Shown here: positions 1 to 53,334 of the stretch, in pieces
Position numbering within the stretch: the first letter of the stretch is position 1
Layout: the number at the start of each line of letters is the position of its first letter
Program-made: the position numbers and the translations under genes
NCBI GenBank assembly: GCA_015680685.1
Contig: MNCI01000491.1
Coordinates: forward strand, 48,335-112,334
DNA from: Gnetum montanum
Lineage: Eukaryota > Plantae > Gnetophyta
DNA length: 64,000 bases
Direction: 5' to 3'
Notes under the pieces: generated by a model
The model's input: the letters and a program-made list of their open reading frames with translations, nothing else
Databases searched by the model: none
Told to the model about the DNA's origin: nothing

Positions 1-159
1 CACCGAGTCGAGGTCGATAGTGAAACACCACAAAATTTTGAGCTTGGTACTTCCCCAGCAAGAAGTAGGTCCCTGGGACCCACGAACGGCCACGGCTACA
101 TTTGGTGTCGCACAGTGCAAATTTGGGAATCAAGAGGCTTAATGTTCACTAAGTATGCA

Positions 160-545
160 CTACTAGCATATACGCCCAGTGTCAACAATGTATACGCCCA
201 GCGTATACGCCCGACATCCCCAGCATCAACAACGTATACGCCCAGCGTAGACATTCGACTTACACGCCCGATGTACACGCCTCACCTATACGCTCGGCAC
301 CACAGATACATACGCCCGACGATAAAGTCTCAATGACAGAATGAAGACAGCACCGAAGAGCAAGAATCTAAGCAAGTTGGCAGTTGCTAGCGTATACGCC
401 CGGCATATACACCCAGCCATTGTCAACGTGTATGCCCAGCGTCCATAGCATCTCCACCCAAGTTCACATACGCCTAGCACGTCCAGCGTATACGCCCAGC
501 GTGTACGCCAGCCTGATGTAGCGTATACGCCTCGCGTATACGCCC
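160..545. repeat. Array of palindromic GCGTATACGC / TATACGCC motifs in E1 LTR U3 (mirrored at ~16330-16705)
   Basis: Many exact and decayed copies of (A)GCGTATACGCC(C) are directly visible. Confidence 0.85.
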
Positions 546-635
546 AGCAGATGTAATATGTTGTATATTTGTAAATTGTATGCACCCGGTCAATACAACA
601 CGTGTCTCCTAACCCGTGTCTAGCATAACAACCGG

Positions 636-642
636 TATAAAA
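636..642 (+). promoter_or_regulatory. Putative LTR TATA box (TATAAAA)
   Basis: Lies mid-LTR, downstream of the motif array. TATA boxes at comparable mid-LTR positions occur on the minus strand in the E2 (~31630) and E3 (~51482) LTRs. Confidence 0.6.
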
Positions 643-1212
643 ACCCTACTTTTGCACTTCACCTGGACGGTCGGCAAACATCCCAGAGCATACCAGATAC
701 ATTTACGCTGCGCACCAGAGCTAAAACCCTCTTACGCTGGAAAGCCCTGTACGTCGTGTACACAGTCTCTACACTCCGCCTACCGCGCGAACCAGCCGAG
801 TCATCCTTGCATCCACCGGGGCTTTTCTTCCGCCTTGTGTTCCCTTACAACTGCGTTAGACCGGTGCACTGTACTTTGACTCTGTAATACCATTGTTTAC
901 AGTTTACGCTAATTTCTTGCACATTTTTCTATTTACGCTCGTTTACATTTACGCTCTGTTCACATCTGCTACGCCGTTTACGCTCTCGTTTATGCCTGTA
1001 TACGCCATTTACGCATAACCCAGCGTATAGCACTTCAGCATACGTGCAGGTAAATCCTTGTCTGATCCACGTGCGGACCACCCAAGGTACTCTACCTTCG
1101 TGTATTCCAGCTCACCCTCATGCGAAGGCAGGGTCTTCTGTGCGCGTCCTGCAATCCCACGGTCTCTATTTCCTTCCAGCCGGTGACTGACGATTTCAGG
1201 TGGTACAGAAAT

Positions 1213-1229
1213 TGGCGCTAAAAGGAGGG
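1213..1229 (+). other. E1 primer-binding site, tRNA-Asn type
   Basis: TGGCGCTAAAAGGAGGG has one mismatch to the complement of the plant tRNA-Asn 3' end (recalled as ...CCCTCCTTCTAGCGCCA). It lies 5 nt after the LTR. Confidence 0.85.
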
Positions 1230-1399
1230 CCTCCCAAAAACCTCGCTCGCAAACTTCTCAGCGTCTACGCTCATTAGCGTTTTCGCTGCCCTACTTCAAA
1301 CTCTGCAAGTCTTTCAGTGTATACGCTACCAACTTCACAAGGACTGTCCACAGAAACCCCAGCATCTACGTAGCCTAGCCTGAAAACTCATCCTACGAA

Positions 1400-1800
1400 C
1401 TGTCCAGCGTCTACGCTGTTCAGTATTTACGTTGTCCCTTGTTTTACGCTGAGCATTCTTTACGCTGCACTCTGTCTTACGCTGTGCCTGTTTTACGTTG
1501 CACTCTGTCTTACGCTGTGCCTGTTTTACGTTGTCTTGTTTTACGTTGAGCCTTGTCTACGCTGTCTTGTTTTACGTTGTACTTTGTTTACGCTGTACTT
1601 CATTTTACGCTCTATCCTGTTCATGTTGTACTCTGTTTACGTTGTACTTTGTTTTACACCGAAGCTGTATATGCTGCCTAGCGTATACGCTGCCTAGCGT
1701 ATACGCTGCACCCCTTACGCTGTATACGCTATCTACGCTGATGCTATACACTGAACGTTGAATCATATACGCTACACTTTGTCCCTTAGTTTACGCTGTA
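1400..1800 (+). repeat. E1 5' leader with degenerate (TT)TACGCT / TTTTACGTTG repeats
   Basis: Short repeats such as gttttacgctg, ctgtcttacgctgtgcctgttttacgttg (x2) and gcctagcgtatacgct (x2). Confidence 0.75.
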
Positions 1801-1852
1801 CCAAGTACACTAATTTCACTCCTCTACCCCATGTCACCCTTAACAATTCATC

Positions 1853-4800
1853 ATGAACCCCGTGAACACCACCGTTGCAACAGCTCAAGTAACCGACGTT
1901 GTGGACACCATGGCTGTCCAACAGCCTGTCATGCAACACCCGGGAGTACAACCCACCATGGGGCCCCACCGGTCCCTAAGGTTGCAAGGGAGAGACCCGG
2001 CCTTCGACATCATAACCCAGGATCAGTATAATTTTATATGCATTAAGATACAAGCTGGATTGGTTGTAGACCGAGCCGAACTAGAGGTAAAGAGGCAGTT
2101 CGAACTCTTTTACAGAGGGGGGCGTGAGTTCATCCCCTCACCATATGACATCATCCCTGTTCCAGAGCAGTATTCAGAGCTCGTCACACAGCTCCTCCTG
2201 CAAAGGAGACACTCCTTGGATCAGCCTGCACTAGAGTCCCAACTAGAGGAAGAGGACGAATTTGCCGCTCAATCTGAACAAGAAGATTCTTACCACACTC
2301 TGAGCCCACAAGCACACATTAACCCCATTTTTCATCCCAGTACAGGGGAGATCATGCCAATCCAACCCCTCAGACTAACTCACACACAAATGCCTCCATC
2401 GCACACATCCTCATTTGCTCATGTGCCACCTCCAAATGATCCGCAATTCAGCATGCTCCCTCTCGCCATCATCCCCGATGCAGCAGTTGGTCCATCTTCA
2501 CATGCACCGCCCCCTCACGATAGCGTGGGAGTGACACTCCCACCCCGAGTGATAGGGATGCCACACGTGATACCGGCATCCACATCCGCTCACTACATCC
2601 CGCACATTCAAACACATACAGCCCCTTCTACCGTCGTAACCCAACAGGGGGTCCCTCCACAAAACGTAGCTGCACAACGGGTAACGATGGGCGCTCAACC
2701 ACAGCAACATCAACCTCCTCACTATAACATACCACCTCGTATAGTTCAACCAGCCAACGTTCCCCCAGTACAACCACCACCACAGCAACCACAGCCTTTC
2801 CCCTATCACGTGCCACAAGTGCAACCCCCCGCCGCACAACTTTCGGCCTTTCAACCCACCGTCCAACAGTCTAACCCGTATAATATAGCACAACCTCAAG
2901 CTGCCATGTTACCGAGTGCCCAAGATTGGGCGGATGCCAAGAAACTAATGCAAGAATTAGCTGACGAGGTAAAACGCCTCAAAATAGCCGCCGATGGGGA
3001 GCTGAAGGTAGTGGACTTCTATCAAGATGACCCCATCAGCTCATCTGTCTCACCCTTAACCTTGCCCAAAGGTGTTTCCTTACCAACACTAACCAAATAC
3101 AATGGGGAGACAAACCCCAATGCACACTTGATAACATTTAGGCTAGAATGTGTGCTGCTCCAGGCATAGCCCCATTCCATTCTCCGAGTGTTCCCCATGT
3201 CCCTCGTAGGGAGGGCACTTGATTGGTATCGAGCCCTGTCAAGGAATTCCATCTTCTCCTTGGAAGACTTATTACACCAGTTCGTGACTCAGTTCAAGTA
3301 CAACTTGAAACCCGAGGCCACCTTGGACAGCCTCATACAGGTTAAGCAAGCACCGCTTGAACCTGTACAGAAATTTATTCAGAGGTGGAGCGCCGCTCTC
3401 AACGAACTACATGAGCCAATCTCCCAAACCTACCTGCTTACTATTCTAAAAGGAGCTGTTAATGATTTCTTTAAATCCAAGCTGTATTACCTTAATGCGC
3501 GTGATCTTAACCAAGCATTTGTATAAATTAAAAACATAGAAGAAGCGGCCCAAAACAGCCATGACCCTACATACCTAGCCTTTAAGAATTAACACACCAA
3601 AAAAGATAAAGAGAAGGCTAAGGTAACTATAGCGACGATAGCAGGGGCGCAACAACAAAACAACCCACCCACAGCCCCTACTAACTACAATAAACCAACT
3701 CCCACAGCCGCGCCAGAGTCATCATCGTCGCAAAACCCAACAACGAACCGTACGCGGAACTTTGAGAGGAAAGAGCCCTCTTAATATACGCCTCTGCCAA
3801 TGAAGCCTTCCCAGCTCTTCGATCAACTCCTGAAGGCTGGGCTGATGAAACATAAACAGTTGTCCCTCGCGGCCATCCAGAGACATGACCGGTTCTGCCA
3901 ACTCGTTCAGAACCCAAGTTTAGCAATGCCGGATGAGCCTCCCGTACCCAAAGGCTTTAGAATGGATCGCTTTTGCGACTACCATCAACGAAACGGACAC
4001 GGTACGGATTACTATTTCACCTTGAAACAGGATATTTAGCGGATGATCGATAAAGGCCAAATCACTTTTGACGAGGCCAACCCAGTCCAACCACAGAACC
4101 AAGCTATGGGGGTGTACAAAGACCCCTTGAACACAAAGAGGCACCATACATCATTAATACAATCTACCTTGATGATGATTCTGAAGCACCCAACATTAAC
4201 ACTGTCTATCCCTAATATAAACAGGAAACACCTAATAGGTCATTTGTAGTTCAGATTCCCCCCGCCGTGTCCACGCCCACGCCTAACACCATGACACGGG
4301 ACAAACCGTATGTAGTGTGTGTCCCTCCCGTCATCCCCTCGAATGCATCAACCCCTCATACTTGGCCTACCCCTTTCATAGTCTGGGTACCACCCGCGAT
4401 CGCAATAGCAGAGGTCCAACCTCCACCAAAACCAACTCCGTATGTCGTTAGGATACCCGAAACTCCTAATGATTACCAAACCTCCATCTCACAAGTGCCA
4501 GGACAACCCAGTCCCTACGTCATTAGGGTCCCTGACCAGCTTTCCAACCAGTCACATCCAATGGCACAACCGCAACCCCGCCCAGCTCCATATGTGGTGC
4601 GAATCCCAGGGCAGCCCGAGGCTCCAAGACCAGCCCCACCTCCACGCCACACACGAGAATGCCTAGCAGATAGGCTTACACGTGAACATGTGGAGAAGGA
4701 ACGCCAACGATTAGCTCTGGGGCCACCTAAGCCCATTCCACTTAACTCTATGCCTATGTCGTTGTCTAACAACCAATCGGACGCATGTAATGAAGGCGAA

Positions 4801-5952
4801 TCATCTGAAAAATATGAACCGCTTAAAACAACAGCTTCAAACAAAAATGACAAACCAACAAAACATGAAATAAAACTGTTGGGCCCAATGGACCCAGTTA
4901 TCATTGATAAAAACGCTCCAAACAGTAAAGATTTAGCAACGGCCTTGACACAAGTCACCCAAGCATTGAAGCAAAAGAACACTTCGTTGAGCCTGTATGA
5001 TTTAGTGCTAACATCCCAAACACATCGAGAAGCTCTAGTACGCATGTTAACATCGATCCGGGTAAGCGAGGACTTGCCCCCGAACGAACCCGCCATCCAT
5101 GCGGTAATGTACTCGTCTCACGGGACCACTCCTAAACCCTTGAGCTTCCATGATGACAACATTAAGGTGGACAAGAAAATAGGGGAAATAACAACAGCTC
5201 CCATGTTCATAATGATACGTATAAACCAATTTAAGATACATAGGGTCCACGTAGACGATGGAGCCGCAACAAATGTTGTACTATATCCCATCGTTGAACA
5301 ATTGGGGCTTACTGAATTGATTAAACCAACTGCGATTACATGTTTAAAGTCGTTCAGCAGGTCACGTGTAATGGTAAAAGGCACAATAACTTTAGATTTC
5401 ATAGCAGGAGACCAATTTCCTACATCTGCTGAATTCCTAGTAGTTGATGAGATGCCAGGGTTCAACCTGATATTAGGAAGACCTTGGTTGGCCCAACTGA
5501 GAGCTGTCTCCTCCCCTGTACACCAAGAGATCCACCTGCCTTATGAAGGCGGTGAAATCATTATACACGGGGAAGCCGCTACGCCTATTATCTCATCACA
5601 CGTGGACGTGGACCAAGGCTCAGAAGTCGAGCTTGAAGAGCCTAAGCAAAACGATAAAAATGCGCACCCACTGGTAAGCAATAAACCTTCGAACATAGAA
5701 CAAGAGCCTCCTAAAACAGAAACACCCGCGTTTGACGTTGTGCATACAACCGCTCCAATGGAAAATAACACAGAACCCCCACCAACTATCGAAACCTCTG
5801 AAAACATTGACATGGAAGCCATTCCATCAGATGTCCCTTGGGCTGAATTACCATTCAATGTGATTAGCGAAGGGGACACTGAATACAGAATCATACCCAT
5901 TGACATATTGCCTAACATTAAAAAGAAGAAAATCAAAAAACTATTACAATAA
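1853..5952 (+). pseudogene. gag: E1 gag-aspartic protease ORF (several stops, one frameshift near 4140)
   Basis: Pro/Gln-rich N-terminus, retrotransposon gag core (KYNGETNPNAHL...FPMSLVGRALDWY), Tat/Ogre-type knuckle CDYHQRNGHGTDY, and protease VHVDDGAATNV...FNLILGRPWL. Confidence 0.9.
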
Positions 5953-6209
5953 TATTGACACTTTAGTCCGAAATAACGTTAAACTACAACTTGTCCGAAA
6001 TGACACTAAACTACGATCAATCGAAGAAAACAAAAAAACATTATTATTACTAAAAAACAATTAAACTCAAAATCAACAAAAAATTTTCTTACATGTGATG
6101 TTGTACAATTACAAGTGTCAACTGTTTTTGTCCATCTCAAAATTTTCAAGTTACAATTCCCGTATAAGTCCGAGTCAAAAAACAACAAAAACTTAAAAAC
6201 TAAAAAAGC

Positions 6210-9200
6210 CTAAGCATCCGAGACGGGAGGATCGTCCCCTTTAGATCCACTAGCATCAGAGGCCCCTGCTCCACTGGGGCCAGCTTCTTAAGCATCATCG
6301 CCACCTTCATTCTGAAAATACCAAAAAGAAGAACCAACATAAGAATAAGTGAATGTCAAAGTTTTAAATACCATTCAGTAAATTTCATAAGGATAAAACG
6401 CTTACCATAGGAGATCCCCCTAAGCCAAACTCCAATCGACGAAGGATTTCTTCTTCTGAAACGCTGGCCCAGTCTATCCCATCTAGGCCTAAGTCAATGT
6501 CTGCCAAAGTCTTTCCTTTGTCGACAGCTGACCAGGTAGGACGTTTCAAAGGGAACTCACCCACCGACACTTCCCCAGAAGTAGTTGTCATCACCCTTGT
6601 AGGCGATTCCATTTCCACAGTTGTATTCTGAGCAAAAGTATCGAAAGCGGAATGCAAACCCAAACCCTCCACAAACATCTCTAGTTGCCATTTTTCAATA
6701 GACACCTCTTTTAGTGACTTCTTGTAGTAATGTTTGTGATTTTTGTCATCTTGACCCCACTTATGAACCTTGGAAGCAAAGGCCTTCCAATCTTGACATT
6801 TAAAGTTCAGGAGATCAATTTGGGCTTTGTGCTCCGCCATTCTCCGAGTCAGCGATGCATGACGATTCAGTAGATTCCAATATCTAGTGTATGTGACCTC
6901 GAACGTTCGCCAGGAGCGATCACCGCTTAGTCTAGCAGCGGCAAACTCATATCGAGCCTTCAGATCGTCACGTTCCACTGACAACTCAGAGACTTCCCTT
7001 TCTTTTGCCTGAATCTGTAGCCAAAACTACTCAATGGAATGTCTACAGGTCCACAACAATTTAGCATTGTGCACAAAGCCTTCTGCAACTCCATCGTAAA
7101 TAGGCCTTAGCACCTGTTCCACTTCTGGGGAAAGTGCGGTTAAACTTTCTATGCTAATGCTTTCAGAGGGATCCCATCTCAATTTAGCGCCTATCCATGT
7201 GAAAAATACAAATGTTAGGACAATATAAATAAGATGTGAAATTCCAAACCTTTAAATAATGTATACCTATGTCAAGGTGGGCCTCCTGGATCCGTTCAAT
7301 GACTTCCTCTGCGAGCCCAGCCACAAAATCCATTTTGCTTGGCATTTTAGACCAAGTAAATGGCTCACGGGTACGGGATGAACTAACCTCAGTGGTCCTC
7401 TCCGGGGGAACCATCTTCATCGGTACATCCAAACGCACCATCCTGGTCTCACTGCCTTCATCTGGACAAGATAAAAACGCAAAAAATAAAACACAAAAAA
7501 AATAAAAATACCACAAAAATGATGAATGACAGGCGAAATTGAAATGAGATAAAGAGAAAAACATACCATGATCCTTGTCACCCTCTGGGGGGTCACCTAA
7601 ATCCAGGTCTCCCTGAAGAAACCTACAAAACACTTGATCGACACTGCCCTGGTCGTCCAGTGGCTCAGTTTCTGTGGTTTTCTCCTTTAACTCCTCCGTC
7701 CCTCTGCCCTGGCTCTTCTCTGTATGTTCCTCCTCGTTGTTCTTCTCCGTATTGGTCTCCTCCTCCTCGGTGATAGTCTCTAGATCCTGCTTCCTCACTA
7801 TTTTAAAATCAAGCCAAAGACATCAATAACATGTAAGCAATTGAAGTAAAAGTTATAAACAAAACGAAAATGACAAAGTAATAAACAGGCGAGGTCCGCT
7901 TACCAGGCATCTTGAAGCGTATCCACTTCACGCATGGCTAGTTCACACCGGAGATTTCCTCAACCGTGCGTTCAGGCCACTTTAGCTTTGACTTAGCTTG
8001 GCCAACGGTCTCCTTGATGACCCGTTCTGCCCTTTTAGCAGTGTAGGGTACCTCGTCTGGCTCCAACCCCAAACTATCACGTGTGCGGATTGAACCGCCC
8101 GATAAACCCCCTGTAGTAATAGAAGCGGATTCATCAATACCTTCAGGTGCATCTTGGGATTTAGCTGTCTCAAACAAGTGATTGATCCACGGGCGGGATA
8201 TTTGACCCTGATCCTGCAAAACAAACTTGTTGTCTGCGCGAACTACCAGGAACTCGGCAAAATGGTGAAGATAACTGGCAAAGAATGCGAAGGTGAAATG
8301 GGATTACGCCTCGACATTCGAACGCAACCGCACTATCTCCTTGTGCATGCCCGACAACAAAAATCGTGCCCAGTTATATCGCATGCCTGTTTCCAAAACA
8401 GTTCGCATGACATGAACAGCCTCAACCCCAAGACATCTCACCTGGTAAAGAGTTTTAGGGAATACCCGTGCTCTGAACAGGGGATATAGTTCGTTCACCT
8501 CCACAACTTTTGCCTTCCCCTGCATCGGGAATCCCTTGGCACCCTTGGCCACGCCTAGCCAATCTTCTAACTCCCAAATCGTTTGGAGCTCTTTATGAGC
8601 TCTGTCTAATACTACATTTAAGCCATCTGCTGGTATGCCAAATAGGTTTGAAAAGAACTCGGGCGACAGATGGAAAACTACCTTCACACCCTTAATCCGG
8701 GTGTTGTAGTATGAGACAGACTCATTAAAAGAGTCTACAATCCCAATCATCTCCCCAATGGAAATGTCAGGACTCGGGAACATAAAAACCTCCATGAGGC
8801 CAGCATTATCTAGGCAACGAGCGAGGGATAGAGGAGCATGATTATGCAACCACTTCTGAGCCTTAGTCACCCCTCCGAACTTCATTGACAAAGTCGTCTC
8901 AGTTCGTCCAGTGGTCACCAGATCCTCACCAGAAGGTACATCAACTGTAAAAGTAATTTAAAATGGTCGTATCAGCGTAAATCAAAACAATTGGACAAAC
9001 CCGTTAACATATCTAGAAAATGTTATCATTTACCATGGGTGGTGGATCTAGATGTGCTGCCAAGGTCATGGAGGGAAGACTGGCCCATTGTCAGTCCAGT
9101 CTTCATGAAGCCACCCACGTGCCTTGCACATCGCAAATGCTCTAGAGAACTGCTTATGAAAATGGACCATCAAACCCTTCGTTTGACCCAGTACGGTCCC

Positions 9201-10656
9201 ACGAAAGGTGGGGCCCATCATGAATGCCTCCAGAGCAGTGCGAGCAAGGGCTAATCCTTCATCTTCAATGAGTGTCCCATCTGGGTTGGTCTTTGGCCTG
9301 TAAGCAAATATGGGTCAAAACAAGAAACAAATGCTAAACAGCGAAAGGAAACAGTAAACTTAAACATTCCTACCTGGCCACTCAATACACCGTGCCAGGA
9401 GGGTTCTGGAATAATGTATGTGCACGGGCAACTATGAACAACGTATTGTTGAGGTAGTCTAACCCTCGCGGAAATAATGCCCACACGTGCGTTAATGGGC
9501 GTGTAGACCGGGGCCCGCGGGTAGTACCATCCTCGTTAACAAGAGGCCCCTCGTCAATGTCCTGTATGAAAACCATGACATCCTCTATAGCCCCCGGTAG
9601 CATCTCCTCAAGCACACTCCGTGCAGTCACCTCGTAGAAGTTTAACCAGATAGCCACCTCGAAATTGTCCAACAAGAAGGATAGAAATCCACATGCGCCT
9701 CCCTTGAACCAAACCTCGTTGTTATCCATGGTCAGATCCGAGGGAACCTCGCCATCCTCAACAGGGCCAACCCATGTTAATACCCCAACAAGTTCGACAA
9801 CGATGAGGAAGCGCTTGCTGTCCCTGCAAACAATCATGATGCCACGACAGATTAGCCTGAAAAGCGAAATTTTACGTCATAGATTGACATTTGAAATCTA
9901 AAGATTCACTAACTGTTTACACTCAGCGTATACGCCAACAAAACTGTTTACACTTAACATAAAAACGTAATTTAAACTCAGCGTATACGCTGTACACTGA
10001 GCGTATACGCTGCCTAGCTCAGCGTATATGCTGACAATAAACTGTTTCACGCTGTCGCCCGAACTTCGTACGCTCAACGTATACGCCCTAGAAATCATTG
10101 GCGTATATGCCCAAGTGCCCTTCCAGCGTAAACAGTCTATGCCAGCGCTGAACAAAATGTTTACGCCAGAAAGATGAAAAAACAAGTTTACGCTGAAAGA
10201 CAACTGCAAATTAATAGCATATACGCCGAATAAACCCTTAGCGTATACGCCATCACAATAAACAGAATTTACGCTGATAAAACAAGCAAATCACGCTGAC
10301 AAGACTTTGCACACAAAAAACTTATGACGTCGTGGCGTACGTTGATATGCTAGTACAGGGAAAATGTTTACGCTGACAAAACTTTACGCTATAAAGTGAC
10401 ACTCGACGTATACGCCGCAAAACCTCATACACCTAAAAACCCCTACGCTCGGCGTATATGCCGAGACTGTCTACACTATAAAAGAAAAAGCACAGAAATA
10501 ATTAAAGGCATAGATCAGAGCCTACCTGTGGGATGTCATGGGCTAGGATGGGATCCTTGGCCTGGGCAGGCCCTGCAGCATAGCTTCCGTCTCCTCCGCG
10601 AAGGTCAAGTCGGGACCCTTCCTCCACTGGCCCTCCACTTCTTTGCCCTTGCCCAT
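6210..10656 (-). pseudogene. Antisense 8-exon accessory gene inside E1: FCP1/NIF-like HAD domain + plant-transposon-like domain + coiled coil (~1065 codons, premature stops)
   Basis: Predicted exons 10656-10526, 9823-9374, 9297-9034, 8944-7904, 7797-7567, 7461-7267, 7190-6406, 6311-6210. All introns are GT-AG and phase-compatible except one 1-nt shift in exon 3. Homologous exons occur in E2 and E3. Confidence 0.8.
9900..10470. repeat. Second GCGTATACGC / TTTACGCT motif array, within intron 1 of the antisense gene
   Basis: Repeated agcgtatacgct/cc and tttacgctg; same motifs as in the LTR and leader. Confidence 0.8.
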
Positions 10657-10914
10657 CTCAGCCTGTTTACGCTAACGATACAAGTTTATGCTGAAGAGAA
10701 AAAGTGTCTACACTGACGCCTAGAAGTTTACACTTTGCGTCTACGCTGGGGTTCAATGCTGCACGTCTCCACTGGGGTTATTCTTCGACATCTACGCTCA
10801 CGAGGAAATTTACGCTTGCGCTAAGGCACTGTAGTTTACGCTTATGCTTTAACAGTTTACGCTGCCGCTTACGCTCTATCGCTTTTAAAGTAAGAAGCAA
10901 ATGGACCCCCCCCC

Positions 10915-10956
10915 TTTTATATAGCACTCCGCTGACGCTGACGCTGACGCTGACGC
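10915..10956 (-). promoter_or_regulatory. Putative internal promoter of the antisense gene: CTATATAAAA plus (GCTGAC)4 containing TGACG motifs
   Basis: Minus-strand TATA at 10915-10924, ~260 nt upstream of the ATG at 10656; tandem TGACG at 10931-10956. Confidence 0.45.
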
Positions 10957-11330
10957 CGCCGTTTAATCCGCCATTGCTCCTTTTTGCCTTTTTCCTTATT
11001 TTTCGCCCAAAAAAAATAAAAAAAATATATATAATAAAAATAATAAAAATTTTAAAAAATACAGATCGCTACGTCTTGGTTCCTCCGTGGACCCCATTTT
11101 ACACGTTTACTCTAAACGTTCTAGTTTAAACCGCCACTTACGGCCCGGTACGGCCGTAAACTGCCATTTCCTAATCCAGTTACGGCCCGATATGGCCTTA
11201 AACTGCCATGTGTCCTGGTGTGATGGTAATCCACCATTATGCATGTACACATAGTTTAAAAGCACCAAAAGACACAGAACGATACCCCTTTTCTTATTTA
11301 GCTCTCTGTTTATTGGTAGGAGCAAGCTCA

Positions 11331-14300
11331 ATGGACTACCAGCATTTAACCACACCGTTAATCATTGATGGACCACACGGCAAAATTACAAGAGACATTA
11401 ACATAAATCTCATCAACTTGAGTTCACTAACGGACAACGCAGTCATAGCCTCAACACAGCAAATAACAGACGATTACAAAGGCATGACAAAATTCCTTGA
11501 CATAGAGGCCGAGAATATCACTAAAGACCCGTTGTCTGAAACTCCCATCGTCATGCCCAATGGAGGAACTAAAATTTTAAAGTTAAGCACCTTATTACAA
11601 CCACCATTAGCCAAAAACATTGAGAACGTGCTTAGGGAAAATATGAAAGCATTCGCTTGGTCCTATACGAACATGCCCGGGCTAGATCCCCGAATTATCC
11701 AACACAATATTATCCTTGACCCAAAGTTGAGACCAGTAAAAAAAAAGCACGAAAGGTTAAGCCCGAGGTGGCATTAGGAGTTCACAATGAGATCACCAAG
11801 CTTTATCAAGTTGGTTTCATTCGGGCTGTTGATTATGCCGAGTGGGTGTCTAACATGGTCATTATTCCGAAGAAGAACGGAAGCATTTGTTTGTGCATTG
11901 ACTTCTAGGATTTGAATGTTGCAACCATAAAGGATGATTTTCCTCTACCCAGCATCAATCAACTTATTGACTCAACTGCTGGGCACGCACTATTATCCTT
12001 TATGGATGGCTTCTCAGGATACAATCAGATACGAATCAACCTGGAGCATCAGCTTCGGACGACCTTTATGACACCATGGGGAACCTTTTGTTACACAATG
12101 ATGCCTTTTGGTCTCAAGAACGCTGGGGCCACGTATCAAAGAGCGATGACATTTATCTTTAGCGATTACATACTACACTCACTCAACGATTACGTGGATG
12201 ACATTATGGTTAAGTCAAAGACGGAGGAACAACATGTACAAGATCTCGATTTAGTATTAAAACGTTGTCTGAAGTATGAACTGAGGCTTAACCCGAAAAA
12301 GTGTGTCTTCGGTGTCAAAACAGGAAAAATGCTTGGATTTATAGCATCAAAAGCAGGGATACGAGCAGACCCTGATAAGGTTAAGGCCATAACAAACCTG
12401 AAACCACCAGGCAACCTTACTGAACTTCGAGGTCTACAAGGTAGATTACAGTTCATCAGGCGCTTCATAGAAAAACTGACAGATAAAATAAAACCCATGA
12501 ACCACCTGTTACGCAAGAATGTACATTTTGAATGGACTCCGCAGTGTCAACAAGCATTCAATGACATTAAAACAACACTTGCCTAGTTACCCATGGTTTA
12601 TCCACCTCAAAACGATAAACCATTCTACATCTACCTTGCTACTTCGGATTCGTCCATTGCATCTATGCTTTGCTAGAGACGTGATGACGGAACCGAAGTT
12701 CCTGTATATTACCTAAGCCACGCATTAGTTTCCCATGAGAAAAAGTACAACGACGTGGAGAAGTCATGTTTAGCTTTGGTTTTTTCTTTAAGAAAGTGGC
12801 AACATTACCTCTTCCGTAACTAGGTTTACATAATTTGCAAGGACAATGTACTAAGAGCCATAACAGGGAATATTTACGAAACAACTCGAATAGCCCGGTG
12901 GAATGCCATGATAGCCAAGTTTGACCTGTACTACATAGCGCAATCATTAGTTAAGGGTCAAGCTATGGTAAATCAAATGGCAACATCACCAACGCGCGAC
13001 CAAGCGACTATAGACCCAGACTTCCCAGATGAGAATATAAGCACCATAGACATAGTGCCTGATGACTACGATGCTATTTTGAAATTTGATGGGGCATCCG
13101 CCTCTCGGGGAGGAAGTGCAGCCGCTGTCATCACCTATCCCTCTAGGGAGATCTGACCCTTTGCCTATCGTTTCAACTTTCCTTGTACGAACAACATAGC
13201 AGAGTATGAAGGTCTCCTTAGAAGACTCGCGGCAGCTCTGGCTTTAAACATCACATGGCTTGTAGTCAGAGGGGACTCACAACTGGTCATAAACCAAGTC
13301 ATAGAGGTCTATACATGCAAAGCCCGACATTTACAACCATACTACGACTTGGCAAAACACCTAATGAGGCAATTCGAAAACATCGATATGCAACACGTCT
13401 CCAGAAATGATAACACCATCGCAGATGCGTTAGCCACATTAGCACTAAACTTATCTCCAAACATGTTCCACACATTGCCAAGCTCCATAACCAGTTGTGC
13501 TGAACCAATCACCGACACCCTTGACACGTTGCCGATTGCATCTGTTAGTTCAACACACGCGATAGAATGGTACGACGACATAAAAGAATACCTTCTACGT
13601 GGCGAAACACCATGACATCTAACAAATGCACAGAGAGACGCAGTGCGGAAACGTTCTAAGCAGTATACCCTGGTAGGGGACACACTGTGCTGAAGATCCT
13701 ACGAAGGCATATTGCTAACATGCGTTAGTAGTACCGATGCCCAAACTATTGTTGAACAGGTACATGAAGGACTATGTGGAGGACACATAGCACCAAAATC
13801 CATGGCAACGAAAATTAGGCGCTTGGGCTATTATTGGCCACACATGGAATACGACTGTCTCACCAAAGTCAAAATATGTAATACTTGTCAAAAACATAGC
13901 AATCTGATACATGTCCCACCGAATGAGTTGCATACAACGCCAATCACATGGCCCTTTCAAAAGTGGGGGTTGAACCTCATTGGTCAGATAACCCCCTCAT
14001 CTTCTGCGGGCCATAGTTTCATTATAACTGCCATAGAATACTTCACGAAGTGGGTAGAAGCTGCTCCCCTTCAAAAAACTACATCCAAGCACGTGTGCAA
14101 TTTCATTCTAGAAAACATTGTAACCCGCTTTGGCATTCCCATGACAATCATCACTGACAACGGGCCATAATTTAGCAGTGCCGAAACCAAAGCCTTTTGT
14201 GAAAATTTAGCGATCAAACACTTGTTTTCATCCCCTTACTATCCTCAAAGCAATGGACAAGCGGAAGCAACAAACAAGAGAATTATTACAATACTTAAGA

Positions 14301-14806
14301 AAATGCTTACCCATAACAAAAGAAAATGGCACGAACAATTGGTGTACGCATTGTGGGCATACCATACTACGCACCGAACTTCGACAGGTAAGTAACCATA
14401 CAGTCTTGTTTACGGTTCAGAAGCTGTTTTACCTTTGGAATTGTAGGTACCATCTTTAACGATCACACTTTCTGGGCTCCTTGACGATGGGCAAAACAAT
14501 GATCTACACGTCGTTGATCTTGACTCAGTGGAGGAAGAACGTGTGCGCGCCCTCAATCAGATTGAATGGTACCAAAAACGACAACAGCAACGACATCGGC
14601 ATGACATCAACAAGTGCCCTATCAAAGAAGGTGACCTTGTGCTTAAAGCCGTTTGGGAACACCCGGACAAATTCTCAGCTAACTGGGAAGGGCCTTACTT
14701 GGTTACTAAAGCATTCGACAATGGAGCATTCAAACTAGCTAACATGGAAGAAAACGAGCTTACCAATCTGACCAATCACTTGTACCTAAAACCGTTTTAC
14801 GTTTGA
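11331..14806 (+). pseudogene. pol: E1 pol: RT - RNase H - additional (archaeal-type) RNase H - integrase
   Basis: RT: KDDFPLP, MDGFSGYNQI, MPFGLKNAGATYQR, YVDD. aRH: LKFDGAS, TNNIAEYEG, GDSQLV, NTIADALA. Integrase: HEGLCGGH..CNTC, TDNG, WEGPY. No chromodomain. Stops and frameshifts are present. Confidence 0.95.
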
Positions 14807-14829
14807 GTACAAGCTCAGGTACGCGCAAG

Positions 14830-15200
14830 TCCTGGAATCATGACTATAAACTGATACCACAACTCGTCCTGGGATCATGACAGTAAACTGATACCACAGA
14901 ACAGTCCTTGGTTATGACTTAAAACTGACGCCACACATGTCCTGGCATCATGACAATAAACTGATACCCCACAATGTCTGCAATGACGATAAACTAGCAC
15001 CCTTCCGGCATGACAGTACACTGCCACCGTCACAACCATCGGAGTCCACTAAAACTATAAACTAGCTTGCCTCCTCATAGTCCGCTAAGACTAAAAACTG
15101 GCAATGTAACGTCCGCCACGACGCTAAACAGGCAATGTCCAACGGGTTAAGACATAAAACTAGCCCATGATAGTCAGCCGAGACTATAAACTGGCAAGTT
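14830..15200 (+). repeat. Degenerate ~30-37 bp tandem repeat (CATGAC..TAAACTG) in the E1 3' UTR
   Basis: About ten units, e.g. catgactataaactgataccac, catgacagtaaactgataccac, catgacaataaactgataccc. Confidence 0.85.
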
Positions 15201-16176
15201 CGTCTTTGGTTCATCAATCTGCCACCACATCTAAGCTTCATCACTGCATCACCTGCCATCAGAGGATCCTACCGACGCTGTTACTACTGACACACAATCT
15301 GCTGCCATGTAAGTCTAAACTCGATCATTCACTCATGGTTTTCTTATCTCCTTGGAGTTGGGTTTGCAGGATGATACCCAAAGGTTTTCGCACAAGAATG
15401 CATTTCATCACAAGCAGCAAGATGGGACAATGTTCACAGCACACATGGCGAGATTAAATCAAACTATTCACAAGTACATCCCCATTCACCGACTCATTCC
15501 CTATCCATTCACAAACACATTTTATTCAATCATACCTCTGATACATCCAGTACACCCAAAACTTTCAACATGCTGTCACATACTGTCGCACATGAGTACA
15601 AAATCAATGCAAAGTTTACGATTTTTTTAAAAAAAAAGCGAGACTTCTGGCACTTCTCATATAAGCCCCGGGCGAGAAGGCAGTTGTCTCAAAACCAAGT
15701 ACTCATGTCTAAAACGGTGAAGAAGCATCTAGCTGCATGGCTTTGGCTCTCTGCCAATGGGTTCCCCACTAAACATTGAACACGGGCCCTATTCCTCCAA
15801 AGCATGTAACACATCTCCCCGTGACTTTGGTCTTGCCAACAAATGCTCTTGAACACTAACCAGGAGCCTTGTTCCGCCAAAGAACGCACTTGCATGTCTG
15901 GACTCCGAGTCTGCTAAATAATGGCTATTAACAAGGACCAGCATGCCGCACGCCCGAGCACCCCATCTCCCAGCATAATTTCTTGGGGAGTCGCCACTCC
16001 CCACAATCTCTTTCCTCCTATCAGGTACAAATTTCCCTTTTTTGATCCCATGTACTACTAAACACGGTGCAAGGACGTCTAGTCAAGTGGCAAAGAATGA
16101 AGTCTATATCAAGTTGCTTGTGGTGTTTTGCACTTCTTTGTCGATGCTTCTCGGGTCGATTCCTCCAAGCGTCAAT

Positions 16177-16185
16177 AAAGAGGGG
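16177..16185 (+). other. E1 polypurine tract
   Basis: AAAGAGGGG just before the 3' LTR; identical in E3. Confidence 0.85.
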
Positions 16186-16189
16186 CCAA

Positions 16190-17336
16190 TGAAACACCAC
16201 AAAATTTCAAGCTTGGTACTTCCCCAGCAAGAAGCAGGTCCCTAGGACCCACGAACGACCACGGCTACATTTGGTGTCGCATAGTGCAACTTTGGGAATC
16301 AAGAGGCTTAATGTTTACTAAGTATGCACTACCAGCGTATACGCCCAGCATCAATAGCGTATACGCTCAGCATATACGCCCGACATCCCCAGCGTATACG
16401 CCCAGCGTAGACATCCGACTTACACGCCCGATGTACATGCCTCACTTGTACGCTCGGTACCACAGATGCATACGCCCGACGATGAAGTCTCAATGATAGA
16501 ATGAAGATAACACGGAAGAGCAAAAATTGAAGTAAGTCGGTAGCCGCCAACGTATACGCCCGGCGTATACACACAGCCATTGTCGGCGTGTATGCCCAGC
16601 GTCCATAGCATCTCCACCCAAGTTCACATACGCCCAGCACGTTCAGCGTATACGCCCAGTGTGTACGTCAGCCTGATGTAGCGTATACACCCCGCGTATA
16701 CGCCCAGCAGATGTAATTTGTTGTATATTTGTAAATTGTATGCACCCGGTCAACGCGCCACGTGTCTCCTAACCCGAGTCTAGCATAACAACTGGTATAA
16801 AAACCCTACTTTTCCACTTCACCTAGACGGTCAACAAACATCCCAGAGCATACCAGAGACATTTACGCTGCGCACCAGAGCTAAAACCCTCTTACGCTGG
16901 AAAACCCTGTACGCTGTGTACACAATCTCTACGCTCCGCCTACTGCGCGAACCAGCTGAGTCATCCTTGCATCCACCGGGGCTTTTCGTCCGCCTTGTGT
17001 TCCATCACAACTGCGTTAGACCGGTGCACTGTACTTTGACTCTGTAATACCATTGTTTACAATTTACGCTAATTTCTTACACGTTTTTCTGTTTACGCTC
17101 GTTTACATTTACGCTCTGTTCACATCTGCTACGCCATTTACGCATAACCCAGCGTATAGCACTTTGGCATACGTGCGGGTAAATCCTTGTCTGATCCGCA
17201 TGCAGACCACCCAAGGTACTCTGCCTTCGTGCATTCCAGCTTGTCCTCAAGCGAAGGCAGGGTCTTCTATGTGCGTTCTGCGATCCCACGGTCTCTATTT
17301 CCTTCCAGCCGATGACCGATGATTTCAGGCGATACA
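16190..17336 (+). repeat. E1 3' LTR (1147 bp)
   Basis: TGAAACACCAC...GATACA, followed by TSD GATAG. Confidence 0.95.
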
Positions 17337-17341
17337 GATAG

Positions 17342-20300
17342 ACCATGATTCGTTGTTCTGGGCTTCGCTTATGGCGTCGGACAGGATCATCCGAAGTGAG
17401 GGTACCTGCAACTCAAGAGGCAATACAGCTTCAAATCCGTAAATAAGACTATAAGGGGTCTTACTCGTTGTAGTTCTGTAAGTCATCCGATAGGCCCAGA
17501 GGACGTAAAGTATTTGCTCGTGCCACCGCCTCTTGCTATTGCTAAGAATACACTTCAGCAAGTTCATTATGGACTTATTTGTAGCCTCCGCCTACCCATT
17601 CGCCTGCGGATAGTAAGGGGAAGAAAGTGATTGTTTAATGCCTAGGTTGCTACAGAAGGTTTAGGTTTCTATACTGCTGAACTGTGGTCCATTGTCGATC
17701 ACGATAGTCTTCGAAAGCCCAAACCTAGTTACGATGTTATCGAGGATGAAACGGCAGATTTGCTGAGATGTCGTTTTCCTCAGGGGAATAGCTTCCACTC
17801 ACTTAGTAAAATACTCTGTGGCAGTGATAATGAAGCTATGCCCTACGGAGGACTTAGGTGTGATAGACCCTATGAGGTCTAGTCCCCATCGTTGGAAGGG
17901 CCATGTAATCTATGTTGGGTGCAGGTCTATAGGTGCTATGTGTATGAGGTTTGCATATCTCTAGCACGTGTTACATGTCTTGACCTTCGACAAGTAATCA
18001 TGCTCCATGTAGAGACAATAGTACCCTAGGCATATGATTTTCACAGCCATAGCCTTGGGTGCTATGTGTCCACCACACAGCCCTTCGTGAACCTCATTAA
18101 CTACTTTTCGTGCTTGCTTACCGCCCACGCATGCCAGCAATATCCCATCATAGGATCATCGACACAAGGCGTCATTTCGTATGAGCACGTATTACCGAGC
18201 ACATTTGCGGATTGCATCTCTTTGAGCTGATGTCAATCTACATGGGGATTCGCCATGCTGTAAATAAGCTTTAATGTTATCGTACCACTCCAGGCTGTCT
18301 GCAACGTCGACAGAGGCCACATGTTCTACCTGATTGATAGGCTCCGTGCATTCTATGACCGTAATTGGCAGGTTTTCCAAGGAATGCGATGGGATGTTTA
18401 ACGCAAGGGTAGCTAAGGCATCTGCTACGGTGTTCTCGTTGTGTGGCACGTTTTGCACATCAGTGGTCACGAATTGCTTCAGTAAGGTTTTTGCTAGATC
18501 GTAGTAGGGTTGCAGGTACGTAGCCTTGCAAGCATAGACTTTGGTGATTTGATTCATGACTAGTTGTGAATCTCCCTGGATCACCAAGTGTTGTACATGC
18601 AGCGCGTGGGTAGTTAAGAGGCATCTGAGTAGCCCCTCATACTCTGCAACGTTGTTGGTGCATGGGAATGCCAATCGATAAGTGGATGGGTACATTTCCC
18701 CAGAGGGGAATGTGATCGTGGTAGCAGTGTGACCTCCTTGCGTGTTTGAGGCACCATCAAAATGTAAGGTTTCCTCGAAATGCCACGGGATAGTGGCAAC
18801 ATTGCTAACATATTCGTCCAATAACTCGGGATCTACGGTTGTTTGGTCATCGACTGGTGAGGCCGCTAATTGGGTTGCTATGGCTTGGCCATTTTGTCAA
18901 TGATTGACTTACATAATGTAGGTCAAACTCTGTGGTTATTACTTTCCATCGGGCTATTCTACTACTTTCGTACAGGTTTTCGGTGATAGCCCGGAGTATG
19001 TTACTTTTGCAAATGATGCTAGTTGTGCTGCAGAATAGATAGTGTAGCCACTTTTTTAGTGCGAACACTAAGGCTAAGTAGTTCCTCTCCACCTCATTGT
19101 ATTTTTCCTTGTATGCTATTAGTGCGTGGCTCAGGTAATATACTAGTATCTCAGAACTGTCGTCCCACTTCTGACATAGCAGTGCGACTATGGATGCGTC
19201 GGAGGTGGCAAGGTATATGAAGAAAGGCTTGTCCCTTTACGATGGGTACACCATTGGGAGGTGTGAGAGCTCCTTCTTCAGGTTGTCGAAGACTTGTTGA
19301 CACTGGGTTATCCACTCAAAGTCAACCCCCTTCTTCAGAAGATGTTGCATGGGGTGTAACTTGTCAGTCAACCTTGCTATAAACCTTCGAATGAATTGCA
19401 CTCTACCTTGTAAACCACGTAACTCCTTAAGATTTGTAGGGGGGGCTAGGTTGACGATGGCCTTGACTTTGTCTGGGTCCACCTGTATTCCTACCTTTGA
19501 TACCACAAACCCTAACATGCGTCCGGTCTTGACCCCGAAGATACACTTCTTAGGATTAAGACATAAATAGTGTCTTTGGTAGCATTTGAGAACTAACTCT
19601 AGATCGCGTGGGTGGTGGGCCGCCTCTTTGGACTTAACCGCTATATCATCCACGTAATCGTTTAACATTTTTAGGATGTAGTTGCTGAAAATGTAGGTCA
19701 TAGCTCGTTGGTATGTTGCTCCAACATTCTTTAGCCCGAAAGGCATCATGGTATAGCAGAAGGTTTCCCATGGAGTCATGAAGGTTGTCGATAGCTGGTG
19801 CTCTGGGTTGATGCGGATTTGGTTGTATCCAGAGAAACCATCCATGAAGGATAGCAAAGCATGTCCAACTGTGGTGTCGATGAGTTGATCGATGCTTGGG
19901 AGTGGAAAGTTGTCTTTGATCATTGCCTTGTTCAAGTCTCAAAAGTCTATACACATTCGTATCCCTCCTGTTTTCTTCGAAACCAAAACGATGTTGGACA
20001 CCCACTTCGAATAGTCAACTGCACAGATGAAGCCTGCTCGGTATAACTTGGTGATTTCGTCCCTAACGGCTAGTGTGATTTCTGGCTTAATCTTACGCGT
20101 CTTTTGCTTCACTGCCCTTACGTGTGGGTCTAGGACAATGTTATGCTGAATTAGCTACGGATCTAGACTTGGCATGTTGTCGTATGACCATGCGAAAACA
20201 TCGATTTGATCCTGCAAAGTTTTAATTATGCCCTCATGTATTTGTGTGCCTAGGAGGGAGCCAAGTCTTAATGTCTTCACCTCCTTTCTTGACATGGTTA

Positions 20301-20517: not shown

Positions 20518-21405
20518 TTCTTGCTTTGACCTACCATCATAAGATGAAAGCCTGGGTAAGGGTCATCAGAGATTGTGTGAAACGTAAGTTTGCAAAGCAA
20601 CACTGAGATGCAACTTTCTAAGTAAGGTGATGTGCAGATTGAGAGTTTGCTAGTTTAAGGTCGTGGTGGACCGCCAAGGCATAACAGTCTAGAATTGTTA
20701 AAGATATGTAAATCGTTGATGTGAAGTGTGAAGTTGTGTAACCATTGATATGTGAATGCCAAGATGTTAGTTTAGTGTCATTTCGGACTGCCATATTGCG
20801 AAATGCGATATGCAAGATCTTGATAATAAAAAGAATGGAACTGTGAGTACAAAGGGTATTGAACTACCAGTGTGGGAATAAAGACATGAAACTATTAGAA
20901 AATATGATACCACCTATGCCGAAGCATACGAGGTAACTGCTAATGTAAAAGCGTAGTTAACTTGACGTCATCGCGGACTACGATCATTATGAGTTGAAAT
21001 TACTATTTTTGGATCCTAAGGAGGGTGATCATGCTAGGTTTGTTAGTTTAAGGTCTTTTCAGACCTTCAATTAAAAACAAACATTATTATATTAATTTTT
21101 AGGAAGGCGAGTAATTGGCCTGAAGCATGCCAAGGTTTAAATGCTAATAGTATTGTGATGTCGTGGCGAGCATGCTACGCTGCACGCCGCGCTTAGCATT
21201 AATCAAAGAGAGAGAAAAAAAAGTTTCCACATTTTGCCACTACTGCCATAAATAGGGATTGAACTTTGGTAATTTTGACATTTTTATAGTAAAAGTGTAG
21301 AATTCTCATCGAAGCACTTGGCAATTTCAAAGCGCGGAGCAATTGTGTTAAGCGGTTAGCAAGGCAAATTTCTAAGGCGAATGTCGTAACTCCACAATTA
21401 GGGAC

Positions 21406-24400: not shown

Positions 24401-25784
24401 CATCGGTAAGAAGAAAGACCACAGCCAGATGCTGGTGAGTTCGGCTTTGCATGTATCTTACCGTAGTTCATTTTGGCCATTGCTGACATGCTTAATCATA
24501 TAACAAGTGCTACTGCTGATGCTTCGGGGCTTCCTCCACCTTGTACGGAGTCATGGGCTGAAATCCTTGACAAATTTGCGTTTGTTCAGGGGCTTGTCAA
24601 TGACATGATCAAACACCTTCAACAGATGGATCCCCGTGCAGGTAAGTAGGAGTGTTAATTGCCCTCATGTTGTCACGTTGCAATTTTCGAGCTTATTGAT
24701 TATGTTAAGCTAACGTGTTTACTACGCTTTGTGCACTTTGAACAGCCTCTCGGCTTAAGTGGGACCCGGCACGACCTATGGAGGTTGGTGCGATGCTCGC
24801 ACTCTCACCTGACATGACTGAGGTGTCTCGTCATACATTTGACGAGGCTTACAAATGCATCTTGCACTCGGTGCACTCTCTGTGGGAGTGTAGACGCACC
24901 AATGAATATCTATGGAAACGGATCCAAAGGGCTGATCAGAGAGAGGCCGAATTGGTCGCTGAGTGGAGAATCTCAGGTTGAGGATCAATTTCCTCATAAA
25001 CCGTAACCCTAACCTTGTCGATTTGCAAAGCGCTAGGGACGACTATGCCAGGTTTTGGACTAGCGTTCATCAAAATGTAGAGTCCACCCACAAAATAATC
25101 GAATAGCAGATGCAGATGGACCTGCTAGCCTAGAAGTGCCAAGATATGAAAGACATCAGCACTAAGGTCTTTGAATGGGGGAAAGCCCAGAGGGATCACA
25201 AATATACATACAAGCTAGAAAACGAAACCCATCGAAGATTGTATAAAGATGTTGTTGTGGAGGCGTTCTCGTACGAAACGTTCGTGAAGGCTATCAGTGC
25301 TTCTGAGGCCTACACCAAGTTTAAAAAGTAGGTGAAGGTCATGGAGTCTCCTAACCTGAGGGTGAACCTTCCTACAGGAGAGACCATAACCGCCTCCCTT
25401 TCCCAGGAACCTCTAAAGTGTACGACCTTGGAAAGGGAAAAAGTTGCTGCTGCGAATGCTGAGCCTAGTGATAGGCATTGGATGGACATTTCAATAGAGG
25501 AGATTGAGCGTTGCCTCAGGCTTGGTCTAGACTAGATACCTCTTAAGATTGACGCAGGCTCTCCTCAGGTTGGTCACTTTAATGTTGTGCTATAGCTAGC
25601 GTTTACCACATTTGTTGCCTTAGCTAACTACTCTATTCTCGGGATACAAGCCCTTAATGAAGGTGTGAGGCCCATGCAGGGAGGAAATAAAGAGCCGATA
25701 AGCGGCAACACAGGAGCAGGCGATGTACAAGTAGGTGAAGCGGGGGCAAATGGCGAAGGCGATGTGAACGGGGATAACCCATGA
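21406..25784 (+). pseudogene. E2 copy of the antisense multi-exon accessory gene
   Basis: Exon 1 MAPKTQ... at 21406-21515 (GTGAGT donor, phase 2). Exon 2 at 22039-22491 has LIVLDLEGVLCH..VWFRDGARDFLQFLLNHFSLMVWSS..FQNPQGT. Later exons match E1 (KGWLDKEW, LFGIPTDG, KVFEWG, SIEEIERCLRLGL). Confidence 0.78.
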
Positions 25785-26080
25785 CAGCATGGGACTCCTC
25801 TCTCTTTTATTAAAGTCTTTGAAAATTTTACAAACATTGCCAACGGGCGAAAATTTTGAATGAAATGGAAAAATTTAGTAAGAAAGCTGGTTTTGTATTA
25901 ACTTATGCATTATGTAAAGTTTTCATGCTCTCGTATGCTAGTTTTAGGTCACTTTGGGTCGTTGCTAGTTTTGGGCCATTCCGGGCCGTTAGCGTAGCTT
26001 GCTGAAAAGACGTCATATTGACGAGACAAGGAAACGACGAATATGCAAGGATAGCAACTAGGTGGGAGGTCGCAAGGTTA

Positions 26081-34348: not shown

Positions 34349-34352
34349 CTAG

Positions 34353-39946: not shown

Positions 39947-40529
39947 GTTGTATTCCTATGACATATCCTACAAAACAACCAAAAAAAATGTCAAGCCACA
40001 CCTGTCTTAATAGAATCAAAATGCAAAACATGAGGAAAGAAATGCAATTAATATTTGCCTAAACATGCAAAAGTGAACGTTTGAAAAGCAAGCGTGTAAA
40101 CCAGTTTTGGGCCTCGATAGGCCACGATTGCTAGTTTAAGGTCTTAGCAAACTATGATTTGCCAGTTTAAGGTCTTAGTGGACCATGATTTATGCAAGGT
40201 GCATTAGTTCAAACCAGGAATATCTAAGAAATTTTCTAAGTCTAAGATTGTTAGAAGAAATTTAGAAATTTTTCTAACTCCGGCTGTTATGCTCACCCTT
40301 TGCTATGCTTGCCCCTTCTTGCTACGCTCCATAAGAAACTTAGGAAAATTTTCCTAAGTGTGGGAGTGTCAATGTGGTAGGTGGTGCATTTAATTACCTC
40401 AAGAGGGTATATATGCATGATTCACTGAGGGTAAACTATCATTTTCAAAGTGTGAACAAGAAGTTATAGAACGTAGTGTAATTTGAAATGACAACTAAAG
40501 CATAGTAAGTAAAGCATAGAGACCAAAGC

Positions 40530-53322: not shown

Positions 53323-53334
53323 GCTCTAATATCA
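53323..53334 (-). other. Degenerate tRNA-iMet PBS of the copia host
   Basis: Minus strand TGATATTAGAGC versus consensus TGGTATCAGAGC; 2 nt from the LTR edge at 53337. Confidence 0.65.

Follow-up and report, generated by a model that had tools for sequence, protein, structure and literature searches.

The 64,000-nucleotide stretch of Gnetum montanum DNA analysed here (hereafter the window; assembly GCA_015680685.1, contig MNCI01000491.1, positions 48,335 to 112,334 of the forward strand) contains three collinear long terminal repeat (LTR) retrotransposons, E1, E2 and E3, which were recognised by blastn self-comparison and by tblastx of E1 against the rest of the window. All three share a common order, consisting of an N-terminal gag extension, gag (Retrotrans_gag), protease, a long spacer, a stretch preceding the reverse transcriptase (RT), the RT itself, RNase H (RH), a second RNase H (aRH; RVT_3) and integrase (INT). 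The spacer, which separates the gag-protease stop from the ATG of pol, is the subject of this report. In each element it holds the same gene on the opposite strand, with at least six conserved exons and a coding length of about 1,000 codons.

The spacer occupies positions 5953–11330 in E1 (5.4 kb), about 20518 to about 26083 in E2 (5.6 kb) and about 39947 to about 46560 in E3 (6.6 kb); E1 lies on the plus strand, E2 and E3 on the minus strand. On the protease side, a real stop closes the gag-protease frame in all three elements, behind a conserved Trp..Glu-Leu-Pro-Phe tail. On the pol side, a pyrimidine tract and an acceptor-like TAG/G are followed within 10–25 nt by the ATG that opens pol (read directly at 11300–11333 on the plus strand in E1, about 20545–20515 in E2 and about 39990–39944 in E3), and a Pro-Leu-hydrophobic-hydrophobic motif recurs in all three elements eight or nine residues after this ATG. 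Strong tblastx matches between the spacers were found only on the strand opposite to the elements, at 27–47% amino-acid identity, and the introns of the antisense gene and the remainder of the spacer are no longer alignable. At their edges the spacers show no LTRs, terminal inverted repeats, other direct or inverted terminal repeats or target-site duplication of their own.

To define the antisense gene, the boundaries of the conserved blocks were read base by base and then located by pattern. In E1 the gene runs on the minus strand. Exon 2, which encodes an NIF/FCP1-like domain, spans 9374–9823 and carries an in-frame stop at 9384–9382. Exon 3 (9034–9297) is frameshifted, since its frame shuts at 9068–9066 while another frame reaches the donor; the splice sites of both exons were read directly. 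Exon 4 (7904–8944) encodes a middle domain of 347 codons, matches E2 and E3 at 36–47% by tblastx and is interrupted by in-frame stops at 8306–8304 and 7940–7938. It is followed by exon 5 (7567–7797), an acidic low-complexity linker, by exon 6 (7267–7461), supported by tblastx to E2 and E3 and by its splice sites, and by the last exon, exon 7 (6385–7190), which encodes a charged C-terminal region, has an in-frame stop at 7029–7027 and ends at a natural stop at 6387–6385. A tentative exon 1 lies at 10526–10656, with an ATG at 10656, a donor after 10526 and an in-frame stop inside.

The corresponding copy in E2 (22039–25445, plus strand) has exons at 22039–22491, 22570–22850, 22932–23978, 24108–24434, 24508–24641 and from 24746 onward, and contains many stops. 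That in E3 (42153–45510, plus strand) has exons at 42153–42605, 42677–42962, 43067–44116, 44214–44441, 44537–44679 and from 44769 onward; it too contains many stops, and one donor has been lost. With the exception of this donor, six introns that begin with GT and end in a pyrimidine tract and AG stand at corresponding positions in the three copies. Five of these, between exons 2 and 7, measure 71–129 nt. The sixth conserved splice site is the acceptor before the NIF exon, which implies at least one further exon upstream and a longer first intron, of about 700 nt in E1 if the tentative exon 1 is real. The gene has at least six conserved exons and probably seven or eight in all. Exon lengths are closely kept, at 450, 453 and 453 nt for the NIF exon and 1041, 1047 and 1050 nt for the large exon in E1, E2 and E3, respectively.

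Several features of the exons point to a protein-coding history. The coding frame of E1 holds 0–2 stops per exon, compared with 10–25 when the two long exons are read in the five remaining frames; in exon 4 alone the figures are 2 in the coding frame and 13–25 in the others. Comparison by codon position was made on 1.4–1.6 kb of ungapped aligned blocks per pair of elements. Nucleotide identity in these exon blocks is 48–51%, and the proportion of mismatches at codon positions 1, 2 and 3 is 0.49, 0.31–0.40 and 0.65–0.67, respectively. Exon lengths, splice sites and this periodicity have been kept while the introns have become unalignable, which suggests that the gene was under purifying selection in the past.

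The predicted protein comprises an NIF/FCP1-type domain, the 347-residue middle domain, the acidic linker and a charged C-terminal tail; in database searches the gene was queried exon by exon, the exons not being joined. The NIF exon of E2 matches Pfam NIF (PF03031) with 32.3 bits (E = 9.8e-8), above the curated cut-off of 21.8, and that of E3 reaches 18.7 bits (E = 1.5e-3), below the cut-off. For the E1 exon, 29 of the 30 nearest clusters in the Atlas, which is based on a protein language model, are NIF (score 0.91, 178–193 shared features), and a word-indexed protein search returned nothing. The catalytic DxDx(T/V) motif is kept in no copy: the aligned residues are Glu-Leu-Val-Gly in E1, Asp-Leu-Glu-Gly in E2 and Glu-Leu-Ile-Ser in E3, and the later acidic motif of the NIF domain is likewise replaced. 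Given the loss of the catalytic motif in every copy, the domain is most likely a binding module rather than an enzyme, that is, a likely pseudophosphatase used for binding.

The middle domain gave less. No relatives were found in the word-indexed search, in metagenome contigs or in viral contigs, and none of its pieces matched Pfam, which also gave no PMD or Transposase_28 signal on any part of the antisense gene. Atlas leads were weak, at 0.84–0.88, and comprised plant hypothetical proteins, DUF1985 and PMD, the last two scoring 0.84. An exhaustive search of 1.84 billion representatives yielded a single match, a bacterial Calx-beta repeat protein, which we judged spurious. A seemingly PMD-like stretch, Phe-Gly-Ile-Pro-x-Asp-Gly, raised the question of kinship with PMD, for which neither Pfam nor hhalign gave support; hhalign of both halves of the domain against four Ogre ORF1 domains taken from the comparison loci described below (DUF7745/PMD by Pfam) returned a probability of 0.2%, from very shallow profiles. 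AlphaFold2 models of the middle domain (predicted local distance difference test score, pLDDT, 38) and of the NIF exon (pLDDT 45) were both too poor to use, and Foldseek with the NIF-exon model returned only noise.

Two classes of short motif were observed in the spacers. The first, a hairpin-like GGCC-N6-GGCC-NN-AAACT, occurs 14 times at no more than two mismatches (1.0 expected), at 11142–11204 in E1, 20652–21065 and 25940–25987 in E2, and 40103–40184 and 46022–46307 in E3. All copies are on the sense strand of the element and cluster at the two spacer ends, after the gag-protease stop and before the pol start; at the protease end of E1 (about 5965–6010) there are only more degenerate copies. 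The motif is kept across the three diverged families, and its clusters possibly join the spacer ends or mark the ends of the antisense unit. The second, the palindromic AGCGTATACGC, is found in E1 only, where it occurs 49 times at no more than one mismatch (0.37 expected), at 165–544, 1260–1707, 9925–10747 and 16334–16704, which correspond to both LTRs, the leader and either the first intron of the antisense gene or the region upstream of it. At the matching place, short motif arrays of a different kind are present in E2 and E3. Such arrays may represent control sites common to the LTR and the antisense unit.

E1 extends from 21 to 17336 on the plus strand, between a 5' LTR at 21–1207 and a 3' LTR at 16190–17336 (blastn self-match 21–1209/16190–17338), which are 88% identical, start with TG and end with CA; the ends, and the flanking 5-bp target-site duplication GATAG at 16–20 and 17337–17341, were read directly. 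The gag-protease coding region (1853–5952) has collinear tblastx matches to E2 and E3 and contains the Retrotrans_gag domain (3188–3526; PF03732, E = 3e-8) and, inside the open reading frame (ORF) 4267–5952, the protease with an Asp-Asp-Gly-Ala active-site motif. The pol region (11331–14820) carries RT, RH, aRH and INT by Pfam (RVT_1, E = 3.8e-24; RVT_3, Integrase_H2C2 and rve) and tblastx, and is disrupted by numerous frameshifts. E1 is a complete nested insertion in the integrase of E2, which occupies 17342 to about 29800 on the minus strand by self-comparison and tblastx, so the end of the E2 integrase and its 3' LTR must lie to the left of the window. The LTR pieces of E3 (minus strand) lie at 33612–34352 and 50747–52427; they are just 78–81% identical, which makes E3 much older than E1, and about 930 nt (51008–51935) are present in one and missing from the other.

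The LTRs of E1, E2 and E3 gave no cross-match in blastn, and amino-acid identity of E1 to E2 and E3 by tblastx is 61–66% in RT, 62–66% in INT, 50–60% in gag and 53–56% in protease. On these comparisons the three are distinct, old families, and the copies in the window, with their stops and frameshifts, are dead relics. A preliminary description of this DNA had placed protease and RT kilobases apart in all three elements, with the same opposite-strand gene in each gap despite dissimilar LTRs and diverged proteins. The distances measured from stop to pol start, the antisense-only tblastx matches with their corresponding splice sites, and the LTR and RT comparisons bear this out.

The elements belong to the Tat clade of Ty3/gypsy (non-chromovirus OTA), with the order RT-RH-aRH-INT and the protease fused to gag. 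The aRH (RVT_3/RNase_H) lies between RT/RH and integrase in E2 (18192–18821, E = 9.4e-16) and E1 (13349–13615, E = 2.3e-5). In a collection of 5.8 billion proteins, the best RT matches are Tat-type plant sequences that are just 56–64% identical, the closest named ones being from Ginkgo, Cryptomeria and Taxus. An RT tree with a midpoint root joins E1 and E2 to two ENA sequences, within a clade (97/89 support) that also contains the sequences from Ginkgo, Taxus and Cryptomeria; loci with Ogre ORF1 or a Retand-type Transposase_28 ORF sit in the other main clade. Taken by itself, this placement makes a gymnosperm host probable. A 2026 survey describes RT-RH-aRH-INT as the "retroviral structure" and reports it from Ginkgo, Taxus, conifers II, gnetophytes and angiosperms; it makes no mention of antisense genes, introns or extra ORFs (PMC13468544).

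For comparison, we collected 80 loci of RT relatives (46–58% identity) from metagenome contigs. None encodes anything similar to the antisense protein. Protease and RT are both present in 38 of them, and in every one of these 0.5–1.9 kb separate the two. Several loci are classical Ogre-type elements with 136–433 nt between the two ORFs. The sense ORF1 of such elements (L004:1031–3211, L032:2037–3713 and L016:3847–5274) matches DUF7745 (E down to 5.7e-64) better than PMD in Pfam, and Transposase_28 was found at one locus only, L031.

A close counterpart in layout is Ogre, which makes up lineage IV of Tat and occurs in pea, Medicago and other angiosperms. As in E1–E3, the protease is fused to gag, pol is in a second ORF, aRH lies between RH and INT, and a segment between the ORFs must be bypassed for pol. 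The Ogre gap is a plain short intron, with a mean of 274 bp (PMC6317226), whereas that of E1–E3 is 5.4–6.6 kb long and contains an opposite-strand gene; Ogre has a sense ORF1 (PMD/DUF7745) 5' of gag, whereas no Pfam family was found on E1 1853–3169 or on the ORFs upstream in E2; pol of E1–E3 opens with a conserved ATG; and the RT of E1 and E2 groups with gymnosperm sequences, not with Ogre. Among plant elements with introns, a December 2025 review singles out Ogre and EVADE as the notable ones (PMC12786077).

Antisense accessory genes are themselves known from Tat elements, where they are conserved within lineages and obscure in function. They include PMD or PMD-coiled-coil ORFs in Tat III and V, Transposase_28 in Retand, gene23 in maize Grande, and that of RIRE2; all are described as plain ORFs between pol and the 3' LTR, and in Grande a separate promoter drives transcription of the gene (PMC7264820, PMC4408406, PMC11963269). 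By contrast with these intronless genes 3' of pol, the gene of E1–E3 is placed between protease and RT, is split into at least six exons and has an NIF-like domain at its start; its position, multi-exon structure and NIF-like domain are what is new. Retand (Tat VI) has a long region between pol and the 3' LTR with antisense Transposase_28, whereas in E1 just ~1.4 kb separate integrase from the 3' LTR, with no long ORF; gymnosperm Tat lineage III has aRH downstream of integrase and antisense PMD at the 3' end, whereas aRH is upstream of integrase in E1 and E2.

Outside plants, HBZ of human T-cell leukaemia virus type 1 is a spliced antisense gene that encodes a regulatory protein, and its antisense orientation relative to the genomic RNA is what lets it survive replication. 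The gene is located at the 3' end, where the 3' LTR drives its transcription; it contains a single intron, and its product is a bZIP protein. HBZ, named as an antisense retroviral gene in earlier work (PMC7264820, PMC11963269), resembles the E1–E3 gene in being a spliced antisense gene within a reverse-transcribing element, with no sequence relation between the two. A possible functional parallel, by analogy, is found in Arabidopsis, where MAIN/MAIL1 and PP7L bring together a transposon-derived domain and a phosphatase-like protein of doubtful catalytic activity, and control transposons and genes (PMC7156037). PP7L is of the PPP-type fold, not HAD/NIF, these are host genes and not element-borne ones, and kinship between our middle domain and PMD is unsupported here.

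We consider it probable that E1–E3 represent a Tat lineage whose short gap between gag-protease and pol became a 5.4–6.6 kb segment with an opposite-strand, multi-exon accessory gene. That three families share the place, orientation and exon order of the gene, together with the co-divergence of gene and element, the coding constraint, the conserved introns and the lack of terminal repeats at the spacer edges, indicates that it is an integral part of the element, old and formerly under selection. The preliminary description had likewise proposed an ancient, selected architecture of gag-pro, antisense gene and pol, a proposal to which the shared place and orientation, co-divergence, codon-position pattern and intron positions lend support. 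The terminal repeats or duplication of an independent insertion, which by its account would refute the proposal, were not found at the spacer edges. Its account of Ogre, with an intron between the ORFs, and of other Tat elements, with antisense ORFs 3' of pol, matches the literature (PMC6317226, PMC7264820, PMC4408406, PMC11963269). It had not recognised the layout as described, and we found no description of an antisense gene between protease and RT in the literature searched, the coverage of which is incomplete.

Several observations weigh against this reading and temper it. All three gene copies carry stops and frameshifts, E2 and E3 many more than E1, so that a present-day function is at most putative, and the transcription, splicing and strand of the gene are inferred from its sequence. 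The ratio of non-synonymous to synonymous differences (pN/pS) is lowest in the proposed frame (0.48–0.53, compared with 0.59–1.47 in the five others), a contrast that must be interpreted cautiously because the compared blocks were picked by tblastx in that same frame, which biases pN downward, and because synonymous sites are saturated (pS about 0.81), so that no trustworthy dN/dS value is available. The E1 NIF exon has no Pfam NIF match, and in sequence searches of the PDB neither the E2 piece nor a three-copy profile retrieved a solved NIF structure. The tentative exon 1 of E1 (10656–10526), as a seventh and 5'-most exon, fits the count of eight exons in the preliminary description, but no counterpart of it was found in E2 or E3. 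On the sense strand, a GT that overlaps the gag-protease stop of E2 (26085/26084) is in phase with the acceptor-like site before pol, a match with a one-in-three chance of being accidental, and E1 has no candidate donor in phase with its own site.

The strongest rival, which we regard as distinctly unlikely, is that a host gene with introns was captured once in the protease-RT gap of an ancestral element and has since been carried along without serving it, the similarity between the copies reflecting common descent. NIF is a cellular domain, its catalytic motif is eroded, all three copies are broken, and any function for the element is putative, all of which would fit such a passenger. Yet RT protein differs by 34–39% among the families while exon lengths, intron positions and the codon-position pattern have been kept, and over such a distance neither frame nor splice sites would be expected to survive in a neutral passenger. 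The eroded motif, being common to all three copies, is an old, kept state and not recent decay.

Separate entry of a gene-bearing mobile element into each retrotransposon is very unlikely. Nested insertions are common here, E1 itself sitting in the E2 integrase, and the hairpin-like motif forms clusters at both ends of each spacer, which would fit such entry. Against this, position, orientation and order are identical in the three elements, LTRs, TIRs and duplication are absent from the spacer edges, gene and host elements have diverged in step, and conservation of the flanking gag-protease tail and pol start extends as far as the spacer itself. Equally improbable is that the region is not protein-coding and owes its conservation to cis-acting signals in the RNA or DNA, or to an antisense RNA without coding function. 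Although antisense non-coding transcripts are known in several retroelements (PMC7264820) and the spacer does contain motif arrays, differences at third codon positions are about twice as frequent as at second ones, the proposed E1 frame has 0–2 stops per exon against 10–25 elsewhere, a protein domain is recognised, and the exons are only about 50% identical in nucleotides.

On the reading of an integral accessory gene, the antisense gene would be transcribed from a promoter of its own between its 5' end and the pol start, and its mRNA would be spliced. As the preliminary description argued, soundly and in line with established knowledge, introns on the antisense strand can survive reverse transcription. 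In the genomic RNA those of E1–E3 would read CT..AC and so would not be removed, but copied with each round of retrotransposition. The protein would then be a regulator that serves the element, for example by acting on transcription or against silencing.

For the production of pol there are two explanations of nearly equal standing. In the first, which we rate slightly the lower, the whole spacer would be a giant Ogre-like intron spliced out in sense; in the second, which we slightly prefer, a subgenomic RNA would serve for translation of pol from its own ATG, and this RNA would arise either by splicing from an upstream donor or from a start within the spacer. Scoring with a crude matrix found no conserved sense-strand donor at the end of gag-protease. 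In three of the five Ogre-type loci inspected (L004, L016 and L023), TAA directly follows G, so that the stop forms part of a donor-like GTAA, and the GT at the E2 stop is comparable. Between the 5' end of the antisense gene and pol lies 0.7 kb of AT-rich sequence, which could act bidirectionally.

A fuller scheme, unlikely as a whole, may be put forward. The elements would comprise three transcription units in the manner of complex retroviruses: gag-protease driven by the LTR, a subgenomic pol with its own start codon, and the spliced antisense gene, with a promoter facing away from pol. The pseudophosphatase would favour the element by binding a phosphoprotein of the host, for example the RNA polymerase II tail or a silencing factor, and the hairpin clusters and the arrays shared by the LTRs and the antisense intron would be control sites.

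Descriptions of plant LTR retrotransposons usually present a gag-pol unit, with or without an extra ORF at one end. A family that keeps a gene of at least six exons within its polyprotein region, on the opposite strand, shows that host-style genes can be carried through many rounds of reverse transcription, and that pol can be separated from gag-protease by several kilobases. Standard annotation will miss such genes: the REXdb survey, for instance, scored extra ORFs only on the upstream or downstream side of the polyprotein, and only when they had at least 250 uninterrupted codons (PMC6317226). The NIF-type pseudophosphatase provides a concrete candidate for an element-encoded regulator.

Some further features of the window lie outside the spacers. 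A tandem repeat of 37 nt in 3.9 copies (14826–14968) directly follows the E1 integrase, and another, of 122 nt in two copies (30400–30643), lies upstream of E2 gag. The end of the window, from 52500 to 64000, is AT-rich (GC content 0.29–0.42), and its only ORFs of 100 codons are three at 61429–62388.

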